Shown here one piece after another: positions 1,501 to 55,900 of a stretch of DNA of 64,000 nt. The position numbers and the translations under genes were made by a program. Under the pieces are notes generated by a model. The model saw only the letters and a program-made list of their open reading frames with translations. It did not search any database and had not been told where the DNA came from. This DNA comes from Oikopleura dioica (taxonomy: Eukaryota > Animalia > Chordata), in the NCBI GenBank assembly GCA_907165135.1, contig OU015569.1, positions 12,462,001 through 12,526,000 on the forward strand, read 5' to 3'. Within the stretch, counting starts at the first letter, position 1, and each line of letters opens with the position of its first letter.

Positions 1501-1941
1501 TAGTCCAGTAGTTCTTTCTCTTCTGTCCTTTTCATTCGCTTTACAACACTTGTACTTATATTTACCTGCTCTGCGAAAAATAACTTAGTGATGCGCTTCA
1601 TCAACTATTCAGTTCAATAAAAATAAATACATACAGATTCAAAAAAAGTATTCGCTCTTGAGTTCTCCTCTCTCTCAGAAAGAAATCAGCAGAAATAATG
1701 ATAGTTATTGTTAGTTTTTCTGCCCAATTTGGTGCAAGAATCGTTCGAAACTCGCTGCAGGGAAAAATGCTCCAGGCCGAGTTTTTGTTAAAAGGAGCAA
1801 TACAAGATGGAAGAGTTGTTTTGACGAGAGTGCTTTTTAGAATGTGTTTCCGGCTGGTGATTTTATAGTCCTTTCCCTTACTTCTGGCCTTGATAGCTTA
1901 GAAGAGACTCTCCCAACTTGTCCGTAGGAGAAACAAAAAAG

Positions 1942-2376
1942 ATGTCGCAGAGTGACAATTCGCCGCCTTTGCAAAATGCCCCGGTGAGTATGCTCGCTCA
2001 AACAATTATCAAGAGAATAGTGAGCTTCAGCTTCCAGTGAATGAAGCATCATCTTACTAGCTACCTGCCTAAAATGTTTTTCTTTCAGTCGCAGCAAGTG
2101 TACAATCTGAAGTTCTTGCCCTACCAGCCGTCGAACCAACGTCCGGCAAAGCAGCAAAAGACTAAGCGCCGCGAAAAAGACGGAAATGACGAGAATCCGC
2201 CGAACAAAGTGCGTCCGCGCTCATCGATGGATCCACCCGCCGTGCCGAGTCCACAGTCGCGGATGAAGAACTACTTTGGGAAGACGCGCACTTCCGTCTC
2301 AACTTCCCAGGCGAATCTCGACCTCCTCGGCAGCCGACGACTAAACAGGAAAACGGCCAAAGATAATCTAAACTAA
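1942..2376 (+). CDS. Small basic hypothetical protein (2 exons)
   Basis: ATG 1942, exon 1942-1983, GT-AG intron 1984-2088 (phase 0), exon 2089-2376 in frame: MSQSDNSPPLQNAP|SQQVYNLKFLPYQP... Confidence 0.5.
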
Positions 2377-3206
2377 CTTTACAATTGTTTTATCGAATGT
2401 CCGCTTGCAACTTCGAGAAAGAAATAAATCCAAACCTCGAAGTTCAAGCGTCTTCTTGAATTTACTATCTGAGGCTGTTTCAGTTCGACCAGCTCGCTCG
2501 ATGATGCGCTGCACTTGAGCGGGGCGATCCCACGAACGAATTTTACGCAAGTGTTGAAAATATATACGAACAGGTCTTCACCCAAGGCTCGCCAACATGT
2601 TTAATAATCTTGATCAAATAATAGGAAACTACTGATAGGTGCTAGCTACTGATATTAAAACTACTCATTTTGAACAACACAGCAAATAATTTTTCGACAC
2701 TTGAAAAGCACCCAATTCGCCTGCAACCAAATTCAAGAGTCAGTTTCGGACTCTGAGATCTCGCTGACTTTGATCGACACGGAAGCGGCGCATCGCAATC
2801 CAGCTGATGAGCTCAGGTACGAATCTATATTTATTTCTGCTCTTTTTCCGCTCCAGCGCTCCTTTTTCTATTTCGACTCCTTTTTTGAAATACAGATTCT
2901 GAGGGTTCCGTTTTTTGAAATCATGGCCAGCTCCTGCGAAGAAGATATAGCCTGGCTTTGCAATAAAATTAAACAAAATAATTACGGCTAATAATAATAA
3001 TTTGAATACACTCAAAACATCGAAAAACCCTGAGTTTATAATCGAGTTTTTAAAAAGGAAAGCTGACTTTAGATTTTATTTTCAAAGCCAGAACTAGACT
3101 TCCTGGAAATGGAATACCAAACGTTAATTTCTATTTTGTTAATATTCAAGCGTTTTAAAACTGTTGTAGCGCGCGCTTCGAGCACTGCTTCTCGAGCAAC
3201 CAGGGA

Positions 3207-6200
3207 ATGAGCAACAACGAGACCATTTCGATGTCGGACGTGCTCGAGCTCGACATGTTCAACAACACGGACAGCGTCTACGTTCAAACCAGCCAGGGAC
3301 AAGACATCAACTTCTCCGCGCTCGACATCAAAAGCTCCCCTCCAGGTAGGGCAACCTAAAAGCAATTCTTGCTATTATTTTATGAAGGCTCGCGGCAAAG
3401 CTGGGGCACAGTCCAGCCAAGCAGCCGTCCAGACTCGGCGCAAGGAAGCTCGCCCGTCGTCGTCAACACGCACATTCAGCCGAAGTCGAACCAGAAGTTT
3501 ACCATTCACAATCCCGACAGTGGTCAAAGAACACAAACTAAGGTAAATTCTCCTCTTCTTTTCAAAGATTTTTTGATTGGATTAGTTGGTTGAAGAAGCG
3601 TACGACGACACGGGAACGCTGGCTGAGATCATCGAAAACGGACAGATCCAGCCGCTGGAATTCATTCTCGTCCAGAACACCTCGCCGCTACAAAAAGTCA
3701 ACGAGGAAAGTCTCACCTATCTCAACCAGGGGCAGGCTTACGGCGTCCGTCTCAAACGAAGGAACACTTTTGAAATCATGGAAGACTAATACTAAGCGGA
3801 GTTTAAAGCTGTCTACTAGACATTGTTTAGTCATGATGTCAAAGTAATAGCGAAAGAACCTGTCGCTTATAAGTTATAACTCACTTTTCTTTGTATAAGA
3901 TGCGAATTCTGAGTATTATTGTTGATTCTATCAACACTAATATAAATACTGATTTGAAAAGTCGAAAAAAGACCCGAAGCTTGCAAGCAAATGGGCTTGC
4001 AAATGGACACTCCTTTTCGAATTTGCTTGAGGTAAGTCGAAGGCGCCACTTTCCTAAAACGTAGGGGCGATAAACCAGATCAACCTGGCATCATTTTTCT
4101 CGAAAGAGCAACGCATGACTCACATTTATTTTCCAGCCTTTTTGAAAACGAAAAACAGTGGAAATTAAAAAAAAACAGTAAACATGCGTTTCTGAGATCT
4201 CAAACAGTGAGTCCTCGTTGATTGCAAAAAAAAAACCGAAAAACCGAAAAACAAGAGTTAGAGAGCCAAGTAGCAAAAGTATGCATTAGGGTGATTTTCC
4301 ACGACCGTCGCTTGCAGAATACGGAAGCGGAGCAGATCGAGTCCTGGAGCCAGGCGAATCCTGGAAAACGCTTCATCGAGATCGACAAGGAGCTCAGCAC
4401 AGAGATCAGCTGCGTCAGCAACAAAAAGGAGGAGCTCAACTGCTCCGAGCTGGTCTGGGCGAGTTCCAAAGACGCCGTCGTTTTCATCAAAATCAACTGC
4501 ATTTCGACCGAGTTCACTCAGAAGAAACACGGCGGCGAAAAGGGAGCGCCTTTCCGGTATTCTAGTAATAGGCGTTTTGAGTGAAACCTGAAAACTTAGG
4601 CTGCAACTGGACGCGTTCAAGGAGGACCCCTCGGTGATGCAGTTTAACTCGTCGCAGTGTATCCAGGCGAGCAGTTGCCAAATCCGCGTCTTCAAGGTTC
4701 GAGTGAAAACGAGTCCGAGCGAGTTCGAGAAAGTGAAATTTTCAGCCCCGCGGAGCGGACCGAAAGCAGAAAAGCGACCACCAGCGCGTGTCGAAGGAAA
4801 TGGCGGACGAGAGCTGCAAAGGCAAATACATTCCCTGCTACGAGCGGACGCGGCTGCAGCCGACCCAGCCCTGGGAGCCGCGGCTTCCACTGACGCCCTC
4901 GTTGAAGAGCTCGCCCAGCCAGAATTTGGGCTTTCGAGAAACTCAATCTGACGACACAATGATTTTGGATCAGAATCAATCCGTCGATCAGAGTGTTTTC
5001 GCGTAAGTGTCCTGTTTACACTCATTTCAGAAGCACTGTTACTAGCCCTAATGCTTCTTTAGGGTAGACATCGTGAATTGATTTTTCTTCAGTTTTCTTT
5101 TTCTTAAAATTAACCTCTAGTTTGTTACGCCCTTATTTTATTTCGACGGATTATAGTCTGAAGAAAAGCTCAATTCATGATGGAAATACCTTTTGATAAC
5201 TTTCCTATGCCAAAATATCATCTTGTAAATCTAACGATCTTGACGATTAAAATCGAGTTTTTTTCCCTCAAAGCTTTATTCTATTCTTTCTGATAAAAGA
5301 AGTATATTTTGGCATATTTGATTGACAAAATCAAAGCAGGTCTATTTTGATTTCTCTTCTTTGATTTTGCGAATCAGAATCTGGTGGAAACAGAACTCCT
5401 CTTTTCAAGCTAATCGACGGTTAAATTAATTTTAAAAATAAAATCCCCTTTCGATCAATTTTCAAGCCGTAATTTCTTGCAAAAGGATTCTGGAAAGTAC
5501 AAATTCTATCACTTCCGAAGATTTAAGGCTAGGGTGGTCGATTTGGCCCAAAGCAGGGCTCATAAACTCTGGACTTGTTAATGCCAGAGTACCCCATAAT
5601 AGCTTTAAATAGAGATCCATCCTAGATCTTATGAATTACAGAAGCTTTTTCCGTCATCCAAAGAAAAAAGCCACTTCCGGTGCCTTCAAAGTTGGCATCT
5701 CGGCCAAAATCGCGAAAATAGCCCATCTTCAAGGCTCCAAAACTCCAAAGTTTGCATTATGGTCCTATCAACTCTTACTATTTTTCGATTTCTTAGACCC
5801 TAATCTTAAAATTTACAGAAGATTTTTTTTATTTGATCATTTTTTCTTTAGAAAATTTTTCAATAAACCAAGGTAACTATTTTTGACTATTCATTCCTAT
5901 GAAATGCCCTGCGGGCATAGCCTAGACGCCACAAGCCCTACCCTAAATGAATGTCCTTAGAGTTAGCTTTCCAAAAATGTATCATATGCCACTATTGTAA
6001 AGGGTTGAAATTTCAAAATATTTGGTTCACTTTCAAAATACACTAATTTTCTGCAGCTTTAGTCGCAATTTCCGGGAGATCGAGTAGAGATAGCCAAAAA
6101 GTGCATAAGGAGTTTTTTGCTCCAAATTTTCCGAGGAATCCAAAAATGCGGGTCAAAAAAAAGAACCTGAGACTTGGCCAAAATCGACCACCCTAGCCTT

Positions 6201-32663: not shown

Positions 32664-33189
32664 CACTAGAAGACACTAATTTCATTAAATTGATGAAGCA
32701 AAATAAGGGTGCAACTATGAAAACTTTACCAAAAAAAGAACGAAGAAAAATCCTTGTTTTTCGGGAGATACCCCTTAAAACGAGCACCTGAAGAGTCTGA
32801 AAACAGGTGTCTTTTATTAACATTTGGCGAACAACAAGTGCTCCGGTAATATTTTCTGCTGATTAATTTTAAGGCGCGAGGCAATGTAAATATAATTTTT
32901 GATGAGCTCGAGTGAGCGGCCACGTTGAGCATGTTGAACAAAATTAATGTTTGAGTAGGGCCAGCTACTGCTCAGTCAAAAATTCATCTCAGCTGCTTGA
33001 ATAGCTAAATTTTAAGTTTGTCTGAACGTGGCGAGCGCATCTATAATGCAGCCAGTACCCACCCGCCGACTCGTTCATTTTTCACGAGTCCGCGACGATC
33101 ATTTAAAAAATAGAACAAAAAAGATGCGAATCAAATCAAATTCTAGCAATCATGGCTATTTTTGCTAGGAAACTTGATGTTCTGGCGTA

Positions 33190-33634
33190 AATAAGGGTTT
33201 CGGCTTTTCATTGGTAAATAAAATAAGGGTGTCACTATGTTAACTTTCAAAGAAAAATCTTACTTTTCAAAAGAATTTTTGTTTTGAAAATATGACATAA
33301 CTGGGTTTTTCTTTCAAAGTTAACATAGTGATACCCTTATTTTATTTTATCGATAGATAAGTGAAACCCTTATTTATCTTCTCAAATTTAAAGCAATCAT
33401 GCTCATTTCTGCTCGAAAACCTGAATTTGTTAACTAAATAAGGGTTTCAGTTTTTTATTTGTAAAATAAAATAAGGGTGCCACTATGTTAACTTTCAAAG
33501 AAAAATCTTAATAAATAATTTTTTTCTTTTGAGAAAAAAGTTACATATAGGCGAAAAAGTGGGTGTTTCTTTGATAGTTAACATAGTGACACCCTTATTT
33601 CATTTTATCGATAGAAAAGTGAAACCCTTATTTA
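33190..33634. mobile_element. Two tandem palindromic MITEs of family B, about 190 bp each
   Basis: aaataagggtttc..aaaataagggtgtcactatgttaactttcaaagaaaaa ... tttcaaagttaacatagtgatacccttatt..gaaacccttattt, occurring twice. Confidence 0.75.
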
Positions 33635-39000: not shown

Positions 39001-41411
39001 TCTGGAACCGACAAAAATTTCGACAAATTTTGTGTGGAAATTGTCAACCAATCAGAAGCCTAGATTCGGTCCATCGGCCAATCAGAAGCCGAGTAGCCGC
39101 CCACGCAAATTTTGTCAAAATTCTTTTGTCGGTTCTAGACACTATCCCGATTTTAGCCGTTTTTCATCGAAACAGTCTTTATTGTAGTGAAACCCTTATT
39201 TTGTATCATCAAATGAATCTTTCATCAACTGTCTTTTCTGAATTTTGAAGGTCAAAATTTCAAATTCAAACGAAATTTTTGACAAAATTCTTCACCAAAA
39301 ATCTTCTTTCTTTGAGTTCGATCGTTTCTTAACTTGTTTCTTTTCAGGAAAGCCATACTGTGTCCCCTTCGACATCGTGACTGACGAGCGATTCCGAACT
39401 TCAAACGAGCGACTGGAGAAGCAACTCAAGCTCTTGAAGGGCATCGGCCGAACAATCACGCACAAGCAACCGATCAGCATTGGCGATCTTCGAAGAATGT
39501 ACGACTCAGGCGTCCTCGGCACGTCTAATCCTCTTTCCCTCCTCAGAAAGGTAACAAATCCCCCTCACTATCCCGCTAACTTCTTCCTTTTCCAGGTCTG
39601 GTTCGAAATCACACTTCATTTCTGCCACAAAGGATCAGAAAGCCAAGAAAAACTTCTCAAATCTTCATTCGAGGTAAAGCCGAAAAATCCAACTTACAGT
39701 CAACTAACTGTTGTTTTTTGTAGATTTACAGAGATGCATCTGGAAGAGCATACGTTTCTCGAGGGCGACCGCATCAGAATCGGGGCGAAATTGACGACGT
39801 AAGTTTTTAAACCCTGACTCAGGATTTCAATACAGGTTGCTAAGCCTTTCGTAGCTCTGAATTGATATGTTTTGATGGATTCTAACAGATTTCTTTCTAG
39901 GTTCGAATGTACGAGACTGGAGGCGATCTCTGTCCAGTAAAGTCTTACCAACTTTACCTGATGAAATTGCACCCACTCCAGCCGCGTCTCTTCCAACAGC
40001 CCCGACGCAAGGCGACCCCGACTCGCCCATGTGGTACGGCAAGGCGCCGATCGGAGAGAAGGCTCTGCAGCAAATGATGGCCAATATTTCTGGTTTCTAC
40101 CCGCTCACAAAACTCACAAAACACATCATTCCATACGACATCGTGGGAGACTCCAGAGATCCCTGCGATGTGGTATTTCGTCTAGATAGGAGGCCCGGGG
40201 ACCAGTGTAGCCACTCCTCGTTGTTTTCGCTCTTTGGGAAAATCGCAAGCGTTTCTGTGCGCTTGGTGGCGGTGTCCGAGTTTTGGAAAAGCGTGAACTG
40301 ACACCGACCAAGGCCGGACACCACCACCTCCACAGAAAACCAGCTGCTGGGGCACAATTTCCACAACAGCTTGATTCTCCCGAGCGTTCACTTTCACTGC
40401 CTCCGCCCGGGCTTACTTGAGACGATGCTTTTGTCGAAAAATATTTTGAGATTTCACGAATTCATTTCATTTCATTTTTTGACGGCGAAACTTAAACTTT
40501 TTTGTTTAACACTTTTTTAGCCGCCGCCAAGTTGTCGAAGCGATACACCAACCACTGCGTTCGCACCACCGCGCTGGAGCAGTTTTCGACGAGCAGACGA
40601 GTTCGACCCGCCCAGAGCAGCTCGGTCGGCAGCTCACCGAATAGTAGTCCTAAGATTAGCTCCCCAGAACAGTCGCCTAACTCGCGAACGAGTCCTACTG
40701 TCAGTCAAAGCCCACAGATGTCGCCAAGACAATCTCTTCAGGTAAAAACATCAGCACTTTCATTTTCGATTTTGCAAGTGAAAACCACTTTTTTGCGCCT
40801 AAAAATTGAGCTACAGTGAAACTAACATCAAAATTCTAGCTGAAGGCGGCGCAACAAGCCGCCCAGTACCAGCAGTCTCTCCAAGCCTACGCTCAGAACC
40901 AGATCATGGAGCACAGTTTGAATCAAATGAAGCAGAACATCTCGCAGTTGAACTCGTTCCTGGCGCCGCAGTCCGCTTCCTCGCACTCGATCAACCCGCT
41001 GAGCTCGATTGGCTCCGATCCTCTCTACGACGCGCCACCAGCCACGCCGGTCTACCACGCTGACGACGAGGCCGCTCCCTCTCCCACGTGAGCGCGAATC
41101 ACGGTGGCATGAACTCGCCGACGAACGTCTCCTTCGACAGCGGCGCCAGCTCGCCCAACAGCCGCGCTTCTTCCGAGCACCGCGACTCGATCTGCAAAAT
41201 CTCCTCCGAAGACCTTTTGAACTTCCAGGCTTCGGCCGAGGCGCAGGCCTTGATGCTCCAGTCGCTCAACAGCCTCCAGCCCCAGGACATCCAGGAGCGC
41301 ATCCAAGCAATGGGCTCCCTCTTCGGCCTCGACTCCGACCCATTCGCCATCAATTTGAAGCACATCTCGTCGCTCAGCGGACTCGGCTCCGGCTCCCCCG
41401 TCTCTTGCTGA
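36074..41411 (+). CDS. DUF3504 / Crypton tyrosine-recombinase-derived protein (ZMYM/QRICH1/KCTD1-type domain) with S/P/Q-rich termini; 9 exons; two apparent 1-bp frameshifts
   Basis: KKTAYNEKWGVKVLK|AW..ELNNILAKFWSEVRKSNGDYY..SLFNLRAMINKHLK; GTSNPLSLLRK|VWFEITLHFC; LCPVKSYQLYL; MWYGKAPIGEKALQQMM; YTNHCVRTTA. Frame breaks at about 40017 and 41078. Confidence 0.8.
38993..39148. mobile_element. MITE family C (carries two CCAAT boxes), intronic copy
   Basis: gtctggaaccgacaaaaatttcgacaaattttg ... caaattttgtcaaaattcttttgtcggttctagac; second copy at 60129-60305. Confidence 0.75.
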
Positions 41412-42285
41412 AAACGGCGATTTGAAACGTTCTCCTCCTTGATTTCAGAATCGAAGTCGAAATCAAAAACCAAAAAACAACCATCCTTATCACCTTTCTA
41501 CTCTTCATTCACAGTGTTATAGGTTCACTCCTTTCCGAATCTAAAATTCTAATTCTAATTCTAAAATTCGCAGCCAATTTTTTCTTCTTACCAATTTCAA
41601 CTCTAAAAATAACGACTACACAAATTTTGAAATTTAAAATTTCCGAATTCTGAAAACCCCTAAAAGTGCCTTTTTTCTTTATTTTTTTTTTCTATTTAAA
41701 AATGTTTCTGAAAGTTCGTTCAAAAAAGCTAGAATCTCCGAGTTTTAGCGATTTATTTATTATTTCCCCTTTTATTTTATTTTCATCCTTTTTTGTTTTT
41801 GATATTTTTGCGACCCTAATTCTACTATTTAACGTATGTAACTATGATTTTTTCTTGTAAATAGCCACAACTGCCGCCTTTTGAACCCAAAAGTAGGCCG
41901 CGATTTGGAACAGAAAAATGCCAAAAAAGAACCGAAAATCGGGCATAATTTCGCGCGTTCCAAATGCCTACCGAAAGGGTGTTTCTGCGACCCTAGCCTA
42001 AACCAAACCTAAAAAAGAAAAACGCGTATAACGTAAGAGTTAAACACAAAGAGTCGAGTTTTCGCGAAAGTACAAAAAGTACAATTCTGAATCGATTATA
42101 AAAACAACAACAACTACTGTACAAACTGTAAAGACAACCAAATAAAATACTTTTATAGACTATTCACTGTTATTTTTGATTGACAAAAAATGCTAAAATA
42201 TGTTTCTTATTTCAAGAAAAATTGACATAAAGTCCTCAATCGGTCTTCAGTTGAGCTTAAGGGATCCCCTCCCGATTTGAAAAAT
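40988..42285 (+). repeat. 1.3-kb direct repeat, copy 1 (last exon, 3' UTR and flank of the DUF3504 gene)
   Basis: Aligns by eye from cgatcaacccg to gggatcccctcccgatttgaaaaat with 45566-46841. Confidence 0.92.
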
Positions 42286-42443
42286 GCCATCGAGAGCTTT
42301 TCTGTGATAAAAAATGCTGAAATACGACTTTTTAACTACTTTTTTTAACGATGCAGCGCACGGATTCTCATCTGACCCGGCAACACATTATTCAGAAGAG
42401 TTAGCTCTCAGAAAACTTTGTAAGAAAATATAACTTTTCGAAA

Positions 42444-44933
42444 ATGCCGAAGGTAACGGGGCATCCAGAAGAATTGACAAAAGAGGTCATTAAGAACTGG
42501 CTTGACGGTTTTCATATGCTTTTGAAGAGAAAAACAACGAGGGACGATTTGGACAGACTTATCTTGTCCGTCGAGAGAATGGAGATTGAAGATGTTTATG
42601 GTGGTAAATGGAAAGAGGTTACTTTTGAGGATGGAGAAGGCAAAATTGATTTCCCTCCAGAAAAGTGGACTGTCACTAAATTTCAAAAGAAAATTCTTGA
42701 GCGAAATCCAGATTTAAAAGGAAAAAAACTTGAGCGATCGAAGTTAAAAAGAGAAGAGGGAGAATGGATTCTTGATCCGACTTTGGAGGAGAAAAAAATA
42801 AAAGCTGGCGGAGAAGCAATTATCTTAAACGAAACTTTTGGGAAGTTGGATGTCGCCATTCGAGTCCAATGTTTCGATCCGGCCCTTTTTACGAAGGAGT
42901 TTCCAGAAGCTTCGAATAATGAGCGATTAATTAAGAACTCGGATGAGCTCCATTTTAAAATTCATCTTTCAGGAGGTAATTTAATTAATTGAACTTCGAA
43001 GCTAGAAAAATAAAAATTCAGACTGCGAAGTTGCAGAAAACAAATATGGAAACGACAGTGCGATCCCGTTTCATAAAAATGTCATAAAGAATTTCTCAAA
43101 TATTGAGATTTTCTTGAAGGAAGATATAGAGAAACAGGACTGTCTTGGCTGGATAACAGTCATGGAGAAATGTGATGGTGATTTGAGAACACGGCTAAGA
43201 GGAAACAGTTTGAAAATAGAAGAGAGAAAAGAAATAGCAAAAGGAGTCATGGAGGGATTAAACTATTTGGAAGACGTAGGGATCCGACATCTTGATGCGA
43301 AACCGGAGAATGTTCTCCTAAAAAAGGGAGACTCTGGTATTGTACCCGTGTGGACAGATTTCGGCATCATCGAAGTAGACTCAAAAAGCGAGAAATTTCG
43401 ACAAATGGGTTATACAAGGAGAGGCGACAAATTTAGTTTGGCCCAATACATTGGTTGGTTTAATTTTCATATCATGAAAAAAATAATCCTCCGATTTTTT
43501 TAGGGGCAGGTACACCGGCTTTTACGCAAATTCATCAGTTGGTCAGTAGAGCCAGTGGTAGCGGAACACCTGAGTTTCCAGTGCACATTTGGACCCTTTG
43601 TGACTGGAAAACCGCCTGGAGTCTTTTGTTTATGCCAATTGAAACGGAGGAAAAAAGATTAGAAATCGAAAAAGAGCTCAAGGTACTATATTTCGATAAA
43701 AAAGCGAAGAATTGACTTGTATAATATCTTTAATCTTATTATTTTAGTCTGGCACGGCGGAATGGTTCTTCTCAGAAAACCCGTCAATCGAAGAAATCAA
43801 TAGCGTTTCAGAAATAATTTCCTTGAAAGACACTTCATTTGATTACGCTCTCGATTCAGATCTAACGACATCGAAAGACGTCGCGTATTGGAAGGCTCAA
43901 TACACGAAGCAAATGAACAAAGACTTTGATAATCTGACGCAGAATATTGTCGACCAAAAAGACACGAATCTTTGTGTCCCAATTTCAGTCAGTACTCTTC
44001 TCAGATGGGCACTCAAAAATGACTTGGGTATAGACGATGATACAATGGAAGAATCTTTTACTATAGAAAGAGTTTTGACAGCAATCACAATGATTGTTTA
44101 TCCCCGCAGCTTGGCCGGATTGACTCTCAATCCCAAAAAAGGAGAGCAGTCTTTTCAACACAATGAAATCGAAACGCTTCTCAAAAGACTCAAGTTCAAA
44201 ACTTATTTTCATCCAACTGGCTGGGACATGATCGACGAATTAAAGCGATCACGAGCTGATTTCGATTTTGAACAAGGTAAGGTCACATTATCACTCGTTT
44301 TCCAGAACTTTTCATTGATAAGTGCCACTTCACCAATATTTTAACTTTATCCGTCCGCTGACAGTCACCGGCGCTTTTATGAGGCCCAACGGAACTGTCT
44401 TGATACACCAAATGCTGCTCGACCGAGTTGAAAACTATAAATACGTTCTCCAAAATACTCTCATCAAGAAGTCTGGATCTAAAAATTTCAAAAATCAAAT
44501 CGAAATTCCACTCGACCAACCATACTACGCTTCTTTCGAAATGATGGAAGATTCCTATGCTTTGTACAAGGACTTTGTTTTTTGTGCTGATAACGGCATG
44601 GTCCTAGGAAGATTAGTAAATGAAAACTTCAGCATGAAGAGTGGAACATGGTATCTTCTTCCTCAAGCTTATTCAATCACTTTGAGTTACAAGCCTGCGA
44701 TAGCAACTGCAATCGAAAATTTAAAAGCGGTAAAATTTAATATCAATAATAATGAGAAATTACTCTTTAATTTTGCGATTTAGAAGGGGTTTGAAAAAGG
44801 AAAAGTAATATACGCTGCTACAGTCTACAATGGTGATGAAGAAAGAGCGCTGAGATACTTACGTACCGGTCGCTCGAAGTACCTGAAAGAAGAAAAGTAT
44901 TTTTCAAATACGAATTCAATTCATTTCAACTGA
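42444..44933 (+). CDS. Divergent protein kinase - papain-like cysteine protease - UBA-like fusion protein, about 742 aa, 6 exons
   Basis: Exons 42444-42975, 43022-43453, 43504-43682, 43748-44276, 44323-44729, 44784-44933 join in frame (2229 nt). Kinase: AGGEA, VAIR, VMEKC, HLDAKPENVLL, DFG. Protease: DQKDTNLCVPIS and HQMLL..YVLQNT. UBA: IENLKA|KGFEKGKVIYAATVYNGDEERALRYL. Confidence 0.8.
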
Positions 44934-45555
44934 TTTCTTTAACGAAAAAACTGACTATTTTAACACCCCTCGGGGGTATTTTATGAAAAAAAAAACATTA
45001 ACAAAAACTTACAGAATATTTAACCCGTTGAATTTTACTTGAGGAATTTGCCTGTTAAAATGTTAAAATAAATTACTAAAATATGATAATGACTATTCAT
45101 TTGAAAAAGTTCTCTTGTGATTTATTGGTTTGAATCGTTAAATGACATCTGGAGATAAATGAGTTCGTTTATTGCAGGCTTAACGTTTTCGGAACAGAAA
45201 TTCCATCATCAGAGCAAGTTGCTTGTATGAAAAATTTGACGATCTTTGAAATTTTTCAAAAATTAGGGTTGAAGTGGGGGTGTCTCCTGACCAAAAAATC
45301 TCGAAAACCGAGTTTTTTTTTCTTCGTCAAATATAATTTATAAATAGTTTAGACTCTAAACTTTAGACCTTTAAAAATTAACCGGCGATCAAAAAATTAA
45401 GGGTAACTTTGATAAATTTTTTTTTCTTATTGATTAAAAATATTCGATTTTCGTCAAAATCGATATTTTTAGCAATTTTTTCATGGAAATTTCTACAAAA
45501 ATTACAAAGACTAGGATTTTTTTAAGAATAATTAGTCAAAAATAATTTTAAAACA

Positions 45556-45990
45556 ATGCCTAGTGCGATCAACCCGTTGAGCTCGATTGGCTCCGATCCT
45601 CTCTACGACGCTCCACCAGCAACGCCGGTCTACCACGCTGACGACGAGGCCGCTCCCCTCTCCCACGTGAGCGCTAACCACGGCGGCATGAACTCGCCGA
45701 CGAACGTCTCCTTCGACAGCGGCGCCAGCTCGCCCAACAGCCGCGCTTCTTCGGAGCACCGCGACTCGATCTGCAAAATCTCCTCCGAAGACCTTTTGAA
45801 CTTCCAGGCTTCGGCCGAGGCGCAGGCCTTGATGCTCCAGTCGCTCAACAGCCTCCAGCCCCAGGACATCCAGGAGCGCATCCAAGCAATGGGCTCCCTC
45901 TTCGGCCTCGACTCCGACCCATTCGCCATCAATTTGAAGCACATCTCGTCGCTTAGCGGACTCGGCTCCGGCTCCCCCGTCTCTTGCTGA
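45556..45990 (+). CDS. 144-aa ORF formed from the duplicated DUF3504 last exon plus a new upstream ATG
   Basis: aaaacaATGcctagtg joined to the duplicated sequence; open frame; peptide identical to the parent C-terminus. Confidence 0.4.
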   Translation: MPSAINPLSSIGSDPLYDAPPATPVYHADDEAAPLSHVSANHGGMNSPTNVSFDSGASSPNSRASSEHRDSICKISSEDLLNFQASAEAQALMLQSLNSLQPQDIQERIQAMGSLFGLDSDPFAINLKHISSLSGLGSGSPVSC

Positions 45991-46841
45991 AAACGGCGTT
46001 CTCCTCCTTGATTTCAGAATCGAAGTCGAAATCAAAAACCAAAAAGCAACCATCCTTATCACCTTTCTACTCTTCATTCACAGTGTTATAGGTTCACTCC
46101 TTTCCGAATCTAAAATTCTAATTCTAAAAATTCGCAGCCAATTTTTTCTTCTTACCAATTTCAACTCTAAAAATAACGACTACACAAATTTTGAAATTTA
46201 AAATTTCCCTAAAAATCCCTAAAAGTGCCTTTTTTCCTTATTTTTTTTCTATTTAAAAATGTTTCTGAAAGTTCGTTCAAAAAGCTAGAATCTCCGAGTT
46301 TTAGCGATTTATTTATTATTTCCCCTTTTATTTTATTTTCATCCTTTTTTGTTTTTGATATTTTTGCGACCCTAATTCTACTATTTAACGTATGTAACTA
46401 TGATTTTTTCTTGTAAATAGCCACAACTGCCGCCTTTTGAACCCAAAAGTAGGCCGCGATTTGGAACAGAAAAATGCCAAAAAAGAACCGAAAATCGGGC
46501 ATAATTTCGCGCGTTCCAAATGCCTACCGGAAGGGTGTTTCTGCGACCCTAGCCTAAACCAAACCTAAAAAAGAAAAACGCGTATAACGTAAGAGTTAAT
46601 CACAAAGAGTCGAGTTTTCGCGAAAGTACAAAAAGTACAATTCTGAATCGATTATAAAAACAACAACAACTACTGTACAAACTGTAAAGACAACCAAATA
46701 AAATACTTTTATAGACCATTCACTGTTATTTTTGATAGACGAAAAATGCTAAAATATGTTTCTTATTTGAAGAAAAAGTGACATAAAGTCCTCAATCAGT
46801 CTCCCGTTGAGCTTAAGGGATCCCCTCCCGATTTGAAAAAT
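45566..46841 (+). repeat. 1.3-kb direct repeat, copy 2
   Basis: Matches 40988-42285 with scattered substitutions and small indels. Confidence 0.92.
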
Positions 46842-46912: not shown

Positions 46913-49900
46913 TCAATCATTTTTACAGTCGTCGCCAGTTTCGGAAGTGCATTCTGGGTCGCCTTCGATAATATTGTCGAGCTTCATTTTTTTCATCAAA
47001 TCGTTGAAATTCGACGGATTGAAGTCGGCTTTTATTATCTCCAGATCCGCGAAGCCGTCCGATGCTGATTTCGGCGGGAGATCTTTCTTCAATTCTAAAA
47101 GACAAAAAAAATAAAACAAATTATCTTGTCTCTCTTTTTACCGCGGAGCTTATCCTTATTTTCCTTCTTTTTAATTTGATCCAGCGTATCGAGGACGATT
47201 TTCGGCGTTTCTTCCCGCAACAGTGGCTGATAATCGGTGTAAAAGTGGCATAAATCGTGACTGTAGCTGAAGTGATCGGCCAGAGTCAATTTCAAATTCC
47301 CGCAGCTGAAGTCAGTCACTGTCAAATTTCCGTCAGAGATCTTGAGAGGATCTTCGTACTAGAATCGAATGATAAGAGAGAAGCGACCCGCAGTTTACGA
47401 GATGACACCCTTATTTCTTTTAATAATCTTCAATTTCTCAGCAAATCTGATTTCAGAAATAAGATTATGACATTCGCCTACTTTTCAAAACAAACAAAAA
47501 TAAGGGTATCACTGAGATAAAGCCTCAATCTTCAATCTTAAAATATAAAATAAGGATTTCATTATGCTATGTAGTAGTTTTACACTTATATAAAAACAAA
47601 AATTCTCTCTTGTTAAAGCGCCAAGCTGAAATACAAATCCGTCCGCGTGAAATATTCACCCGCGCGCACGAACGCTCTCGCCGCCGCGACGAGTACACTC
47701 ACCGCCACTACAGCGCAAGTCACTCTACCCAGCACAGACTGCTAATTCAACTCAAACTACAAGTTACTCATCTCCATCTACACATAGCCCGCCAAAGAAT
47801 ACTTTTTATTCACCCTTACTTACAACTCGTTCGCGTGAACTAAAGCTCTATTCACGCGAACACAAGCACTATATAAGTAACCTGCTTCTGCCTTACACAA
47901 CACACAACACGACACACTTTTATAAACTTCTAAAAACACCAATACACTTTTTATCAAGCTCACACCAACCGCCTTGTAGTTTTTATATGCATAAAACCAC
48001 TACAAATGGTGACTGAGTCTTGAAACGAACCAAACTCCCCGAAGAATAAAAACAAACACCGCCGAGAGATTCTTACTAGAGAGCTGCTGCCTTTACACAG
48101 AGGGAAGATCCTGTTTCACAATGAAAATCATAGATAAGGAAAGAGCTAGAAAACTCATCGAAGAGCAATGGGTTCCACTTACCCTTGATGCAGAGATGAT
48201 CGATGCAAATCTCAAAACTGAGCTCAGCGAGCTTGTAAAAAGATCCAAGTCTTGTCAAACAAACGGACCGAAATCCGTTGCGTCGACTTGGCACTGAAAA
48301 AGCGATCTTTATTTTCAAAAATCCATTGGTTGACTTTCTTTCCATGAATGAAACGCAGCAAAATGCAAATTCAGAAGAAGCGAAAAACTTCCTCGAATCT
48401 GAAAATGATGGATTGATTTTCGCAATTGAAAGAGTAAGATCAGCTAGTGGAATGACAGTGAAAAAGGAGGAGCCTCGACAAAATCAAACTGCACCCGAAA
48501 GCAACCAAACAATTTCAGAAGTGAGCAAGCTCGTTGATGCTGGAAAAATCTCAATGAACGAGCTGGAAGTTCTCCTTACAGCCTTTCGCGAACAAAATGC
48601 TCAGGATGATCGCGCGCAGAAGGAAGAGCTAGTTGAACCTAAGCCTCAACTTAGTGAAAACGAACTCACTGCTGACATCCTAAACATCCAGAAACTTGTT
48701 GACACGGGAAAAGTTTCTCCTGCAGAAATTCGACTTCTTGTTGGTGCCTTCCGAGAGCCAGATATCCGAATATCAAGTGTTCCTGAATCAAGAAAAGGTG
48801 TCACTAAGAAAACTTCGAAGTCCACTCCAATTAAAACACCAAATGTGAAGGTCAAAAGCCCGAAATTCGATTCAAGCCTTCCTGTTTCAGCATGGATTCG
48901 CAATATGGAAATCTACGGCCGAGTTTCTAATTTGGATGACGAGTCTCTTATCACAGTAGCTCTAAGCAGTTTGCTTTCCGAAGAGGAGGGAAGTCACATA
49001 ATAGAATCCCTCACTAACGAAGAACTCTGCGACTGGAACTCCTTCAAAATGAGACTTCTTGAAACATTGGGAAAGACACGTGATCACTACAAGCACGAAT
49101 TCGAGAACTACATGCGTGGCAGTGATTCTTTTGGAGTTTGCATGGCGAAGCTGTCCTCATACTACAAGCAAGGATATGATGTAACAGAGCTTCGACGAAC
49201 AGATGAAGAACTATTGATTTCACGTTTCTGTCGAGCACAAGATGACAAACTGCAAGAGCTCCTCTTACGCGAAAAGGGATCACTCAACATGCAGAGCATA
49301 GTACGTCGAGCAAACGAACTTCAACGCAGTCTTCCAAAGGAGAAAGAAGTCAACTTTGCAATTCCTCAAGTTGCACTTCATGAGAATCTTGAGAAGAAAA
49401 TCGAAAGCCTGACTGAAATTGTGCAAAAGATGATAAAAGCGGATTCTGACCGTAAGAAAAAGAATCAACCAGCAAAGAAACGTCCATCAATTGATCAGGA
49501 GAAAACCCAAGGTTACTGCATGAAATTTTTGAGAGATCAAAAATGCTCATATGGAACAAAATGCAAGTACATTCATGACCTTGAAAACGCGCCTGCTTCG
49601 GTTCAAGAATACGCGAAAAACTTATGACTAGGTCAAACAGAACTGTCATGTCCGAATTATCTTACTTGCCCGAAAAATCTCAAATTTATCAACGTGAAAA
49701 TCAACGATCTTACCTACCCTGCTCTCGTGGACACAGCGTGTTCTCGAACATGTATAAACTCGTCTTTACCGTTTATTGGAAAAACAACAAAATCAACGCT
49801 TCAAGTCTACTGCGCAAACAACCAGATCATAACTCCTGATGTTCTTTCAACGCCGCTCTTTATGCAAATAAATAGTCAGGATGGTCCACTAATTCTGAGA

Positions 49901-52900
49901 ACAAAGCCGCTTATCATCAAAAATCTCTGTTGCCCAATCATTCTTGGACTGGACCAGCTTCATGATCTACAAATCAGTGCAGATAACGATTTCATTCTCA
50001 TCAATCAAAAAAGAATCAAGACTGTATATCCAAATCTCAACGAAAAAACAAAAGTTAATGTCAGTGCAATTGTAGAAATTGACGATGACGACAAAAACGA
50101 AAAAAAATCATTAAAAAAATTTCAAAAAATTCGAAGTCAAAAAGCCGCTCAAATCAACTTCAAACCGGAGATTGGCTCTTACGGACAGACTACCGAAGAA
50201 CAAAAACAAAAACTTTTCGCGCTTAATTGTAAATATCGCCTTTCATATTCTATGGGTGATACTGATCTCGGTAAAATCCATGGATATCGATTCTCAATGC
50301 CTTTCCATGATGAGCAAGCAACAACTCATCAACCACCGCGCCCTATCGCAATTCATCTGCAACCAGTAGTTGATTCACAATTCGAAGTTTGGAAATCACT
50401 CGATGTAATTGGAGAAACGCAATCACCGAATAACGTGCCCCTACTGGTACTCAAAAAGGCCGATGGTACTTTTAGAGTCTCTGCTGATGCAAGAAACCTT
50501 AACAACCTTCTTATCAAAGACAGATATCCACTTCCAGCTATGCAGCAAATTTTCTACGAGATTGGAAAACGCCTATCTAACGAAAACTCGTGCTTTATAT
50601 CAAATTTCGACTTGCACCGAGGTTACTGGCAACTACAAACACTTGAAAAAGATCGACCGAAATTGGCCTTCTCTCATAATAATAAACACTACGCAGCGCA
50701 TAGAATGCTTTATGGAGTAGCAACCGGTCCAGCTGCATTTTCAAGATGTATGGCCAAAATCCTTGAGCACAGGAGTATATTGATCTATATTGACGATATC
50801 ATCGCAGTGGATAACACTTTCGAAGAGCATTACAAAACAATCGAATTCATTCTAAAAAGCTGTCAAGAGCACGGAATGCTGCTCTCGCCAAAAAAGGTCT
50901 TCATGTGTAAATCAGAACTCAACTTTCTTGGACATACGATTTCAAAAGATGGTATTCGACCCACCGAAAAACACTTGGAAGTCATCAAAAATCTCAAACC
51001 ACCGCAAAGCCGAAACGAAATCAAGCGATTGCTCGGTACAATAAACTTCAACCTCAAATTCGTGAAGGATGGCTCAGCAATTCTACAACCACTTTATGAG
51101 CTGACATCGAAAAACAGGGAATTCAAGTGGGAAGAAAAACATGAATCAGCATTCGAAACGATAAAGAAACTTTTGCTTGAACGACCATGCTTAGCTCACT
51201 ATAAAGAAGGATCAGAACTGATTCTCGTAACTGACAGCTCTGGATCAAAAATTGGTGGCTGCTTGTATCAAAAAGAAGATGATCAACTGCATCCGATCGG
51301 ATATTTCTCGAAAGCCCTTACAGGACCTGATCTGAGACGAAGCATGCGAGAAAAGGAACTTTTCGCACTGGGATTATCAATCAGCTTCTTCGAATTCTAC
51401 TTGTTGAATACGACCTTTACCGCTGTAGTAGATCATAAAAGCCTACTATTCTTATTCAAAGAGCAAGGAGAACTAAAGAAAAATGATATTAAGAAGATGA
51501 ATATCCTGAATTATCTTCTGCGCTTTGATTTCCGAATTCTACACTTTGATGGAAATTCACCGATCATGGCAACTGCTGACTGGCTAAGTCGTCTTCCTGA
51601 ATACAAAAGCACTGAACTCGAAAAAGATGCTGAAACCTTCGATGGAATCCCAAATACTGTCCTGCTGCTTCATACAGTTGTCCCAGATAGCAAAAAGGAA
51701 GTCTTGCTTACGTTCAGCGATAGAATATTCGACGAAAAACAAATAAACGAGCTGCAAATGAAGTGCAAATTAACACGTAACCTGTTCGAAAAAGCAAGAC
51801 GAAACTCAAAATCAAACTTTCAAATCAAGAAGAATGTCCTTTACAAAGATAATCGCCTGGTATTGCCTAACAATCTAAGCGACGAATTTTTGCAGTATTT
51901 ACACTGTATCACCGGACACTGTGGATCAAAGCAACTGAACATTCTTTGCAGAAAGTTCTACATCCACCAAATTCAAAAGAAAACAAGTCAGCTTACTCGA
52001 TTCTGCCCGACATGTATCCAGATAAAGCCAATGCCAAAGCTAAAACCATCAATGATTGAAAATCGCCGATTCGCAGAAACTCCATTTTCAAAAACGCATT
52101 TTGACCTTGTTGATTACAACAGGCCCGATGCCAATGGAAAAAGATACCTTCTAACAGCCATGGATTCATTAACTGGATTTCTGGATGGTATACCCTTAAC
52201 TCGTAAGACTGATGAAGTTGTTGCAAAACAACTCCTCAATCTAATACTCACACACGGCATAACTGGTGATGCAATTACAGACAACGGAGCCGAGCTAAAT
52301 GGACCACTTGTCACAGAAATCTTCAAACGTTTTGAAATCCGTCATACGACAACTACAGCTTATCGAAGCCAAAGTAATGGTCAACTCGAACGAGTTCACC
52401 GGGAAATACACATGAAGCTTAAAAGCTTGAATGCTTCAAATAAAAACTGGTCCTCAGCGTGGCCAATGAGCAAATACTTTGTCAACAATCTTCCAAAAAG
52501 AAATCTTGATGGACTTAGCGCAAATGAAGCCTACTATGGAAGAAGTTTTCACCCACCATTCCAGACAAATTTCGACGCAAAAGGCCATGGAAAACCTTGG
52601 ATAAAATCAATTGAAAACTACTTCCGAGAACTTCACCCTTCGATTCTAGCGCACCAAATTGCAAAGCACCGCAAACTTTTCGCCGCCGACAAAAACAGCT
52701 GCCCTACCCTTAAAATTGGTCAAAAATGTATGATCTGGAAACCTGCTCTAGGCAAACTCAGCAGAGTTTGGCACGGTCCTTATACGATTCATAAACGAAT
52801 TGCAAAGGATTCCTACATTGTGAAAAACGTGCATACAGGACGCGAATACAGAAGACACATAAATCTGATTCGGCCCTGCAAAATAATACAGCTGGACAAA

Positions 52901-55900
52901 AGCGACTATAATCAAAACGAGAGTATGAAAACCGACAAAGCAGAATCAACCGATGTAAAAATGTCAACCGTGACACAAACAGAAAACGATGATCTTCCAG
53001 CGAAAGAATCAATCAAACAAACGCAAAATTGTTTTGATAAGATTTTGTCAACCGAGACAATAATCGACAAAAATGAAAATTCTTGGTCAAACCGACTTCG
53101 ACCGAGAAAGCAAATCTGAATATAAAGGGGGAGGAAGGGCCTCAACAACCCTTTTTGTAAAATCCACTTTCAAGCAAGAATAAGTGGTTGCCAAAGATGA
53201 AAGACCATAGGACGTCCGACTTGCCAAATTATCCAACTGTAGCTCATGAAGAAGGGACCTTCAACAAACAATGCAAATTCGTCAAAACCCTTTTGGATAA
53301 CTCAATAAAACAAGTCAAATGTGGCCAGTCTTCGACTTTACCGCTGTTGCTGAATATACAGTTATTCAATTGGCCAAACGAATTTCTGTCATATCTGCGA
53401 AAATGTAACTGCCGAGCACGACTGTGGAAAACAAAATTGCTAGAATTCCAATTGGCATTAACAATTTGTGATAACGAAGAAAATTTCAGCGAAATCTTCA
53501 AATACAAAACATCGAAATAAAATCCGCGAAACGAAATCAAAACCGGGAAGGAAAAACCGAAAGCAAACAGATGAGCGCAGCGCAGCTCGTAAATCATAAG
53601 GGAGTAGCCATTGTGAAAGCGTCGAGCGAGGAGCACACACACCGAACCTCTCCCGTCGTTACGTCCCAACAGCAAAACCCTGACGGGGAAACCCCCCCTT
53701 CAAAATGTACCGACGAAAATTCAGAAAATGGAAAAACGTCAGCTTTTATTTAAAATATTTCAAAAAAAAAAGAGCTTATAACGAAGAAAAATGTCCGGCA
53801 GCCGATTTGGCATAATTGAAAATATACCGTATTTGCAAAGAGAAGACCCTAAACGAAGATATATTCAATTCTCACTTTCCTTCATCATTGGATTCAAAGT
53901 TAACCTTCATTGCCTCCGGAATGAACCCAAAACGCGCATTTTACGAGAGTATCTCATCAAAATTGAGGAAGCCCTGCTGAAGGTTGCCCAGAACAGAGAA
54001 TTCACTTTTCTAGCGAGCAATCTACAAGTCCAAGGAGCCACTACGATTGAAGCCCTCCTCAACTGGTCTTATAAAGCACTCATCCTACGATTCTCTAACA
54101 TAAATGAAGAGCAATCGAGAACGGAGATTATCAAGTCTTTCGAGACCGAATTCTATGGAAAAAGATCTCTGTGGAGCGCAATGGCGAATATCACTCCTTC
54201 GGAATTATCATCAATGACAACGAGAGCAGAAATCGTCTGCTATGACTATCTCAACTCATTGAATATTGGGAATTTCAAGCTTTGCGTTGCTCAAGGACCA
54301 ATGCTTACAAACTCGACTTCTGAACAACAAAATAGGAATGCAGAGGAAGTTCAATCGACCTCAACCGCTTGTACCCGCGTAGACAACGTTTACTTCGACC
54401 AAGATCAACTCGACGATCAGTGGATAAATTTTATAGATGGAAACAACCTGAACGATCCGACTCCTGGCTTCACATCTGCATTCGAACAAAAAGCCAGGTC
54501 CAATCAGATGAATGATTTTCCAAAACGAGGATGTTTCTAAAAAGGAGGAGGAATATGTAGTAGTTTTACACTTATATAAAAACAAAAATTCTCTCTTGTT
54601 AAAGCGCCAAGCTGAAATACAAATCCGTCCGCGTGAAATATTCACCCGCGCGCACGAACGCTCTCGCCGCCGCGACGAGTACACTCACCGCCACTACAGC
54701 GCAAGTCACTCTACCCAGCACAGACTGCTAATTCAACTCAAACTACAAGTTACTCATCTCCATCTACACATAGCCCGCCAAAGAATACTTTTTATTCACC
54801 CTTACTTACAACTCGTTCGCGTGAACTAAAGCTCTATTCACGCGAACACAAGCACTATATAAGTAACCTGCTTCTGCCTTACACAACACACAACACGACA
54901 CACTTTTATAAACTTCTAAAAACACCAATACACTTTTTATCAAGCTCACACCAACCGCCTTGTAGTTTTTATATGCATAAAACCACTACAGCTATCTCCC
55001 AGCAAAAATAAAACCTTTAAAAACAAGATAAAGGCCAAAACTAATTTTGAATATCAAAAAATAAGGGGGTAGCTATGCTGACTCAAGGAGAAAATACGTA
55101 TATATCATACCACGAGTGAAATAATATTAGTCCGCATGTAGACGCCGACAATTGCAATCCAAAACGCGCATTTCGTCTGTCGATAATCCTTCTTCGTCCT
55201 TTTCGTTTGAAAGACCTTGCCGATAAAGTACGAGCCGAGAAGTAATGAGGTAATAATGAGTTCTGATTTTTCCGTGGCCCAGTGAACGCGGCCCTCGCAA
55301 TCGCACTTGGGCCGGCCATCTTCTCGGTGGCTCTTTCCTTCGGCGAGGAATTGGAAGGAAACAAAGTTGCCAAAGAAGAGGTTGCTGCCAGTCAACTTTC
55401 CGCAAAACGCTGCCTCATCGTCTGGCACGCCTGATGCTACACACATGGGCGAGAATATCACTCCCAAAAGGTCCAGTGCGTCCAGTTCCGGGAGATTCAG
55501 TTTCTCGCCAACGAGCTCGTAGAAAAAGTCGAAGAGACTCTTTAAATGGGTCTTAAAAATTTTCAGACTGTCATTATTGAAATTCGGGCTTTCGATTTAT
55601 CTAACCGAGAATATAGACTTTTGATTGGCTCATCCAAAAATTCCTCAATTTTATTGGCTGAAATGCGTTTCTTATTGGTTCAAAAAGAAATTTCGCGACC
55701 CTTTCTTGAAAAGCTCCAGCGTCGGAATTGTGCATAAAATCAACCCTGAAAGTCTCAAACAAGACGAAATAGCTCCACAAGCGCCGTCTAATAGTTCTTC
55801 AATCACTGGCTTTGGCGAAGATCTGGACTTGATTTTCCCTGGAAGATCAAGTCGCCGATTCTCTGGCAAGACGAAGTTGTTTATCAGCAGGTGGATGAAG

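Follow-up and report, generated by a model that had tools for sequence, protein, structure and literature searches.

A six-exon gene of Oikopleura dioica joining a kinase fold, a papain-fold domain and a candidate UBA tail

The Locus and Its Gene Model

The plus strand of a 64,000-nt stretch of contig OU015569.1 from Oikopleura dioica (hereafter the window, within which all positions are counted) carries an apparently intact six-exon gene at 42444-44933, whose predicted product is the focus of this report. We regard it as reasonably probable that this protein of 742 amino acids (aa), composed of an N-terminal domain, a kinase fold, a papain-fold peptidase and a UBA tail, is a ubiquitin-directed cysteine protease regulated by its kinase-like domain.

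The gene model was obtained by reading positions 42000-45400, translating the three forward frames and splicing the open pieces at GT..AG sites. The resulting six exons form a continuous 742-aa open frame across introns of 46, 50, 65, 46 and 54 nt, all five of them bounded by GT..AG, and thereby reproduce the splicing to about 742 aa that had been proposed in a preliminary description of the locus. Introns 4 and 5 are furthermore supported by comparison with two related contigs, L003 and L004.

Exon 1 (42444-42975) is read from its open reading frame (ORF) and the splice model as the N-terminal domain of about 115 aa, followed by the initial strands of the kinase. It is separated by intron 1 (42976-43021; 46 nt, GTAATT..TTCAG, phase 1), across which the spliced frame can be aligned to paralogues, from exon 2 (43022-43453), which encodes the kinase core up to the beginning of the activation segment and is recognized by Pfam Pkinase. 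At intron 2 (43454-43503; 50 nt, GTTGGT..TTTAG, phase 1), the joined residues 'QYIG' and 'AGTPAF' pair with 'ALSAATPGF' of the paralogues. Exon 3 (43504-43682) completes the kinase C-lobe and, according to the family alignment, contains the 'GTPAF' P+1/APE-like motif and helix F ('CDWKTAWSLLF'); the following intron 3 (43683-43747; 65 nt, GTACTA..TTTAG, phase 0) is 93.8% identical to L004. The linker and the helical half of the papain-fold domain are encoded by exon 4 (43748-44276), for which relatives were found by phmmer (see below). Intron 4 (44277-44322; 46 nt, GTAAGG..GATAAG, phase 1) has a junction that is also present in L004, with an intron identity of 95.7%, and is followed by exon 5 (44323-44729), to which the family alignment assigns the beta-sheet half of the papain-fold domain, the motif 'WYLLPQAYS' and helix 1 of the UBA. 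Intron 5 (44730-44783; 54 nt, GTAAAA..TTTAG, phase 0), whose position, phase and GT..AG ends are conserved in L003 and L004, leads into exon 6 (44784-44933) with the UBA loop, helices 2-3, a tail of 23 aa and the stop codon at 44931-33.

An alternative acceptor of intron 4 at 44364, which would yield a protein of 728 aa, was dropped. It deletes 14 residues present in all paralogues and in L004, and the acceptor at 44322 is preferred because these conserved residues would otherwise go missing: it restores VPLHQYFNFIRPLTVTG, a stretch that corresponds to VLLHENFVFSRPLTVTG of the paralogues and that contig L004 has also conserved. No second copy of the gene was found by tblastn across the 64-kb window.

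An Atypical Kinase Domain

The N-terminal region of about 115 aa has neither a Pfam match nor known relatives. The kinase-like domain behind it begins with the glycine-rich motif GGEA (42807-42818), which is invariant in the family, and a beta3 strand 'VAIRV' in which Arg (codon 42861-63) replaces the ATP-binding Lys. The catalytic loop HLDAKPEN (43288-43311) and the DFG motif (43357-43365), from which a kinase fold had originally been proposed, are both present, and this proposal is borne out by Pfam Pkinase (PF00069), which scores exon 2 at 43.6 bits (cut-off 31.7; E 3.2e-11; aligned profile positions 74-160 only). Across the family alignment, the catalytic loop retains its Asp in 37 of 38 members and its Lys and Asn in 38/38, the Asp and Gly of DFG are found in all 37 members and the Phe in 35 of them, and the [ST]-P-[GA]-F motif as well as the helix F motif 'CDW..W' are (nearly) invariant.

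Structural analyses were performed with the paralogue P0089 as a proxy, which is about 40% identical to the window protein over the full length. Its AlphaFold2 full-length model, built from a 48-row family alignment (mean pLDDT 81, pTM 0.82), suggests that the domains are packed as a single compact body. In a Foldseek search with this model, IRE1, Pho85, MAP kinases and IRAK4 lead the matches at E values of about 1e-7 and a probability of 1.0. The kinase part is a real eukaryotic-type protein kinase fold, and its conservation pattern marks it as constrained yet atypical: the beta3 Lys is replaced by Arg in the window gene and in 32 of 33 family members, and the domain may therefore serve nucleotide binding or act as a scaffold rather than transfer phosphate. 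KSR kinases carry Arg instead of the beta3 Lys as well. The Oikopleura family resembles KSR-type kinases in this exchange within the VAIK motif and in the retention of the catalytic loop and DFG, but its N-lobe is far more divergent, as seen from the limited stretch of the Pfam profile that can be aligned.

A Papain-Fold Domain With a Peptidase-Type Residue Set

A conserved linker of about 50 aa connects the C-lobe of the kinase to the second conserved domain. A Gln (CAA, 43955-57) and a Cys (TGT, 43973-75) lie within DQKDTNLCVPIS, the Cys six residues behind the Gln, and a His (CAC, 44406-08) and an Asn (AAT, 44454-56) lie within IHQMLLDRVENYKYVLQNT, the Asn 16 residues behind the His; the papain-type Gln/Cys and His/Asn spacings of the preliminary description were thus found as described. 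The Cys is followed in exon 4 by the conserved motifs 'YPRSLAGL' and 'TGW', and the Asn by the C-terminal family motif 'WYLLPQAYS'. The family alignment retains the Gln in 39/39, the Cys in 38/39, the His in 25/26 and the Asn in 22/23 members, a degree of conservation of the catalytic motifs that, as judged from the alignment, exceeds chance.

Residues 405-697 of P0089 were modeled separately with AlphaFold2 from a 41-row alignment, giving a pTM of 0.72 and a pLDDT above 90 in most ten-residue blocks of model residues 68-293. The matches of this model in a Foldseek search of the PDB remain below the threshold and are mostly clan CA peptidases. In a wide search with VIA-align, which is independent of Foldseek, 17 chains reach a Z of at least 8, with a maximum of 9.8, and the best 50 matches all belong to clan CA, with 128-169 residues aligned across model residues 63-293. 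According to the notes of the tool, Z values of 7-8 are common, so that 9.8 is moderately above background, and the fold call therefore relies mainly on the fact that the list contains a single clan. Among the matches are the C1 peptidases xylellain, calotropain, Der f 1, Der p 1, cathepsin B, caricain and falcipain, as well as PCAT1 and ComA (C39), C47, staphopain, streptopain, UfSP, ATG4 and ZUFSP. The proposed clan CA character of the domain is accordingly upheld for the paralogue model, whose 50 best matches are all clan CA peptidases and whose Gln, Cys, His and Asn are conserved.

The alignments to clan CA begin at the Gln. Their first residues (model/chain) are 63/21 for cathepsin B, 64/18 for caricain and 63/9 for ComA; if these starts are ungapped, Gln65 and Cys71 of the model fall on Gln23/Cys29 of cathepsin B, Gln19/Cys25 of caricain and Gln11/Cys17 of ComA, which we take to be the oxyanion-hole Gln and the nucleophilic Cys of these enzymes. 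In the model, Cys71 heads a helix of 16 residues, and His204 and Asn220 are located on paired strands of one hairpin, a predicted layout that is the arrangement of papain.

Neither C1 (PF00112) nor C39 and C39-like peptidases (PF03412, PF13529) are matched at the profile level, and the domain is therefore assigned at the level of the clan fold only. In the Atlas, the features of exon 4 give a weak lead to Peptidase_C1 and those of exon 5 nothing useful. The nearest clusters in the AlphaFold DB are Oikopleura paralogues, one of which bears the automatic name 'Peptidase C39-like domain-containing protein', followed by bacterial C39-like proteins with low TM-scores. Together with C1 and C39 peptidases, the domain shares the two-lobe fold (Z 8.7-9.8), the Gln-Cys-His-Asn order at papain spacing and, in the model, the position of the Cys at the N-terminus of the central helix. 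It differs from them in its own conserved motifs (YPRSLAGLNLNP, TGW and WYLLPxAYS) and in its context, as the Oikopleura protein is devoid of a signal peptide, a propeptide and an ABC transporter and has the domain fused behind a kinase. The modeled domain is best described as a papain fold with an intact peptidase-type Gln-Cys-His-Asn set, outside any described sequence family.

Whether such a fold acts as a peptidase has to be weighed against other activities, since the papain-like superfamily contains many non-protease enzymes (PMC10318531). A transglutaminase, an acyltransferase, a deamidase or a non-catalytic binding module would be compatible with the missing sequence match to any peptidase family and with a best Z value only slightly over the common range. 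However, a Gln six residues ahead of the Cys, a Cys that opens a helix and a hairpin with His-x15-Asn make up a near-invariant set of the peptidase type at papain spacing, and the top fold matches are true C1 and C39 peptidases, so that we judge a non-peptidase function to be unlikely and retain the peptidase assignment.

A Large Family in Oikopleura

A phmmer search with exon 4 against 1.84 billion representative proteins retrieved 67 relatives; a word-seeded search with the paralogue P0012 (CBY13560.1) gave 44 proteins in the full-length range (365-1160 aa), and a profile of the C-terminal domain 256 homologues, fragments included. Every named match to the family comes from Oikopleura dioica, and the rest are short ORFs from marine metagenomes. 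The named members are labeled in the databases as 'unnamed protein product', 'Protein kinase domain-containing protein' or 'Uncharacterized protein'. The window protein is about 40% identical to the full-length paralogues, and none of them is its own database entry. In approximately 40 paralogues, the Gln, Cys, His and Asn are nearly invariant, and no publication describing the family was found in the literature.

The preliminary description knew of no such architecture among characterized animal proteins. This stands for the combination of all three parts, as no protein with a kinase, a papain fold and a UBA was found in the searches, and we know of no described protein that has them all; UBA-bearing deubiquitinases and UBA-bearing kinases exist separately. 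It does not stand for the pairing of kinase and papain fold, which defines a large and unstudied Oikopleura family that is present, uncharacterized, in the databases, whereas the UBA tail is particular to the branch of the window copy.

A kinase and a papain-like fold are also joined in one chain in the plant EDR1/CTR1 Raf-like kinases, which contain the EDR1 domain PF14381 (PMC10318531). In these proteins, the order is the reverse of that in Oikopleura, with the papain-like domain first and the kinase last; moreover, the EDR1 domain falls into a different papain-like cluster near C71/C93, and these kinases are plant proteins without a UBA. A further arrangement was observed on a metagenome contig (L001, ENA ERZ508537, 5032 nt), in which two consecutive ORFs occupy positions 403-3455. 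The first encodes 297 aa and a kinase of more canonical type (HLDVKPSN, DFG, ASPE). The next ORF, P0065, is intron-free and encodes 686 aa with a papain-like domain, a kinase-like segment and another papain-like domain, the second papain-like copy having canonical 'HAVILF...KNS' motifs. As kinase and papain-like ORFs adjoin on this contig, the association of kinase with protease may predate the O. dioica family or reach beyond it.

A Candidate UBA Tail Confined to One Branch

The UBA is divided by intron 5: helix 1 ('AIATAIENLKA', 44697-44729) lies at the end of exon 5, and the loop and helices 2-3 (KGFEKGKVIYAATVYNGDEERALRYL, 44784-44861) are encoded by exon 6, which ends in the basic, non-conserved tail of 23 aa. 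The UBA pattern, which the last exon had been predicted to complete, is present across this junction and kept in two relatives. The 49-aa stretch obtained by splicing has 12 matches among PDB sequences in a phmmer search, 10 of which are UBA-bearing, including RAD23B (E 0.0066), RAD23A (0.017) and UBE2K; the alignments sit on UBA1 or UBA2 of the matched proteins, and the best domain score is weak (9.5 bits). Exon 6 alone, a query that is independent of the splice choice, retrieves 'UBA/TS-N domain-containing protein' clusters (PF00627) from the Atlas at 0.92 with 190 shared features, which exceeds the values given by the tool for genuine members of a family, and nine of the ten best named matches share family or clan with the top UBA match. 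In common with the UBAs of RAD23A/B and UBE2K, the Oikopleura tail keeps the pattern of helix 1, the x-G-F loop, helix 2, the N-G-D turn and helix 3 (A-L-x-[YF]-L). Unlike them, it stays below the Pfam threshold and is attached to a protease-kinase body instead of a shuttle factor or an E2.

Two proteins of metagenome contigs, P0215 with 73% and P0216 with 53% identity, were identified with exon 5 as the query; P0215 is encoded on L003, a Tara Oceans scaffold. The end of exon 5 reads KPAIATAIENLKA in the window, KPAIATAIQNLKA in L003 and KPAITTAIKNLKA in L004; intron 5 has GT..AG ends in all three and a length of 54, 54 and 46 nt, respectively; and exon 6, which starts with KGFEKGKVIYAATVYNGDEERALRYL in the window, starts with MGFEEGEVTAAVRCNNGDEKQALGFL in L003 and with MGFEEGKVIEAV in L004, where the end of the contig is reached. 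Between the window and L003, the same residue is encoded by 13 of the 26 initial codons of exon 6 and by 1 of the 13 codons that follow. The shared residues comprise the G-F loop (KGF in the window, MGF in L003 and L004), the N-G-D-E turn and the A-L..L positions. Since conservation of exon 6 is thus confined to the UBA core, selection on this core is indicated.

By BLAST and motif scan, P0215 and P0216 are the only carriers of the tail, other than the window gene, among 46 family C-termini inspected. The other 43 are devoid of it. Most of these C-termini stop 5-9 residues past 'AYS'; a few have acidic Ser-rich tails, as seen in P0084, P0098, P0197 and P0227 (e.g., 'EDSSDSDSSEQ'), and other tails of about 80 aa occur in P0092 and P0225. 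The family C-terminus seems to be a site at which add-ons are tried, the UBA among them, and the sequences compared here show the UBA tail to be restricted to a small sub-branch, which distinguishes the window gene.

Retention of intron 5 would lead to a stop at TAG 44781-83 and therefore to a protein without a UBA, which ends 17 residues past 'ENLKA', with exon 6 as a chance frame. Such a product would agree with the short C-termini of most paralogues and with the lack of RNA support for the junction. It appears very improbable to us, as exon 6 is recognized as a UBA on its own, the junction completes this UBA with helix 1 from exon 5, and donor, acceptor, phase and UBA core are conserved in two relatives in which the residues behind the UBA diverge.

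A spliced UBA does not have to bind ubiquitin. In AMPK-related kinases, including MARK, the UBA packs on the kinase domain and tunes its conformation without ubiquitin binding. A comparable intramolecular or pairing module is conceivable for the Oikopleura tail, which shares a chain with a kinase fold, scores below the Pfam cut-off and obtains weak domain scores in the PDB. However, the UBAs closest to it in sequence, those of RAD23 and UBE2K, bind ubiquitin, the G-F loop is retained, and the tail is located about 310 residues away from the kinase and behind the protease, whereas the UBA of MARK follows directly after the kinase. A non-binding tail within an otherwise real architecture is hence the most serious competitor of a ubiquitin-binding UBA, albeit a rather unlikely one.

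Expression, Evolution and Genomic Context

None of the indexed RNA runs contains the stretch. When three bulk RNA-seq runs and one single-cell run, all labeled O. dioica, were compared with positions 42300-45100, none of the four contained reads on the window gene at a likeness of at least 90% that could be attributed to it. The reads found are those of paralogues, with a likeness of 90-95% in two patches, 43141-43175 ('CLGWITVMEKC') and 44645-44681 ('WYLLPQAYS'), and their loose ends match the tails of paralogues, e.g., 'LNRLEDSSDS' of P0084, which shows that several paralogues are transcribed in the animals sampled. The window copy is either silent in these samples or has diverged too far from the lineage they represent to be matched. 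Splicing of 44730-44783, for which RNA evidence had been proposed as a check, did not gain confirmation in this way, and with zero reads on the gene the comparison carries no weight in either direction for the junctions.

The closest relatives reveal an uneven divergence. Relative to L004, the introns of the window gene are 92-96% identical, and exons 3, 4 and 5 are 90% (89.9%), 89% and 70% identical. The dS amounts to 0.14-0.16 for exons 3-4 and 0.57 for exon 5 in comparison with L004, and to 0.14 for exon 5 in comparison with L003. Because introns outscore exons and dS jumps between exons 3-4 and exon 5, the mosaic points to gene conversion or recombination between members of the family in addition to diversifying or relaxed evolution. 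The dN/dS values of 0.5-1.1 (Nei-Gojobori) toward the closest relatives likewise indicate fast or relaxed evolution, a pattern that taken alone suits a rapidly evolving functional gene as well as a decaying one.

The gene is flanked by direct repeats of 1.3 kb (40988-42285 and 45566-46841), which are 96.5% identical and about 4.57 kb apart from start to start. A tandem duplication that is partial, a carrier element or an effect of the assembly could account for them. Within the repeat, a GC-rich segment has open frames of 138-181 aa on either strand, for which no convincing family match was obtained (DUF3701 weakly, at 21 bits and below the cut-off). Downstream, a long terminal repeat (LTR) retrotransposon occupies 47568-54990; its 437-bp LTRs (47568-48004 and 54554-54990) are identical, and the element was therefore probably inserted recently. 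Self-comparison of the window shows further repeats of 79.5-94% identity at 18434-18876/19776-20224, 17677-17837/20587-20749 and 33136-33634.

These surroundings, with direct repeats on both sides and a young LTR element adjoining, would fit a silent or decaying member of a family with fast turnover, in which the frame is still open and no longer used, as would the dN/dS range and the zero matching reads despite the presence of paralogue transcripts. In contrast, 742 codons have stayed open over six exons in AT-rich DNA, all five introns have canonical ends, all catalytic and core motifs are kept, exon 6 is conserved in its UBA core alone, and the RNA runs may derive from a divergent O. dioica lineage. 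We consider decay improbable: the open frame, the splice sites and the intact motifs favor a working gene.

With regard to the 5' end, a small upstream ORF (42314-42433) was considered as a first exon, but no in-frame GT..AG link to exon 1 was found; the single good candidate donor at 42420, joined to an acceptor at 42468, leads to a stop codon. This ORF begins with 'MLKYDFLTTFF', resembling the paralogue N-termini 'MLTEFCFLAAL' and 'MLEFSILAI', and could represent a first exon that has decayed or is not used. The hydrophobic N-terminal helix of the paralogues is absent from the copy in the window. Hydropathy analysis finds a non-hydrophobic N-terminus, a maximum 19-residue value of 1.44 and no membrane-like segment, and the protein is therefore read as cytosolic or nuclear.

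Proposed Function and Significance

Taken as a mechanism, the favored reading involves four steps. The papain-fold domain would be an active thiol peptidase or isopeptidase. The UBA would steer it to ubiquitin or ubiquitin-like conjugates, making the protein a deubiquitinase-like or ubiquitin-directed protease. The kinase-like domain, modeled in compact association with the protease, could regulate it by nucleotide binding or phosphorylation, in analogy to IRE1 and RNase L. Finally, a role in defense or conflict would be consistent with the fast mosaic evolution and is the weakest of these steps. In IRE1 and RNase L, a kinase or pseudokinase module controls the enzyme fused to it, and the likeness to the Oikopleura protein lies in the attachment of an effector enzyme to the kinase C-lobe and in the position of IRE1 as top Foldseek match of the full-length P0089 model. 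It does not extend to the effector, which is a KEN ribonuclease and not a protease, and the match covers the kinase only (rmsd about 20 Angstrom in long alignments). The comparison, which implies no homology between the effectors, serves as an analogy for nucleotide-controlled activation.

Several results weigh against this reading. The papain-fold half has no Pfam match at E values up to 10, neither in the exons of the window nor in 41 + 10 family members; neither phmmer nor a family profile found a peptidase for it among PDB sequences; its Foldseek search of the PDB yielded nothing at E <= 0.001; and the model was built on a paralogue that is 40-46% identical to the window protein. For the kinase, an exchange of the beta3 Lys for Arg usually kills activity. 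In Pfam, the spliced UBA stretch matches only UBA_3, with 13.1 bits below a threshold of 20.4, and many UBA-like domains do not bind ubiquitin. The absent reads add to this, as expression of the window gene and its five splice junctions are deduced from sequence comparison, and so does the dN/dS range, which relaxed constraint also yields.

The three folds are known ones, and the novelty lies in their combination in one animal protein, within dozens of fast-evolving copies. The genome of Oikopleura is among the most compact of chordates. In the most far-reaching version, the family would be an unrecognized type of animal enzyme that links a nucleotide-sensing, kinase-like switch to a papain-fold protease output, expanded in larvaceans for defense or conflict, with the UBA branch as a new class of deubiquitinases or ubiquitin-directed proteases; we see this as a speculative and doubtful extension. 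To our knowledge, very little is known about immune or conflict genes of larvaceans, and introns that are better conserved than exons, combined with a mosaic divergence, point to diversifying selection or gene conversion, a pattern typical of such genes. The copy with the UBA tail provides the clearest handle on a substrate, because a UBA points to ubiquitin or a ubiquitin-like modifier, which makes it the natural first member of the family for an assay. If the protease proves active, the family would represent a new sequence family of clan CA and a new example of the fusion of a kinase fold to an effector.

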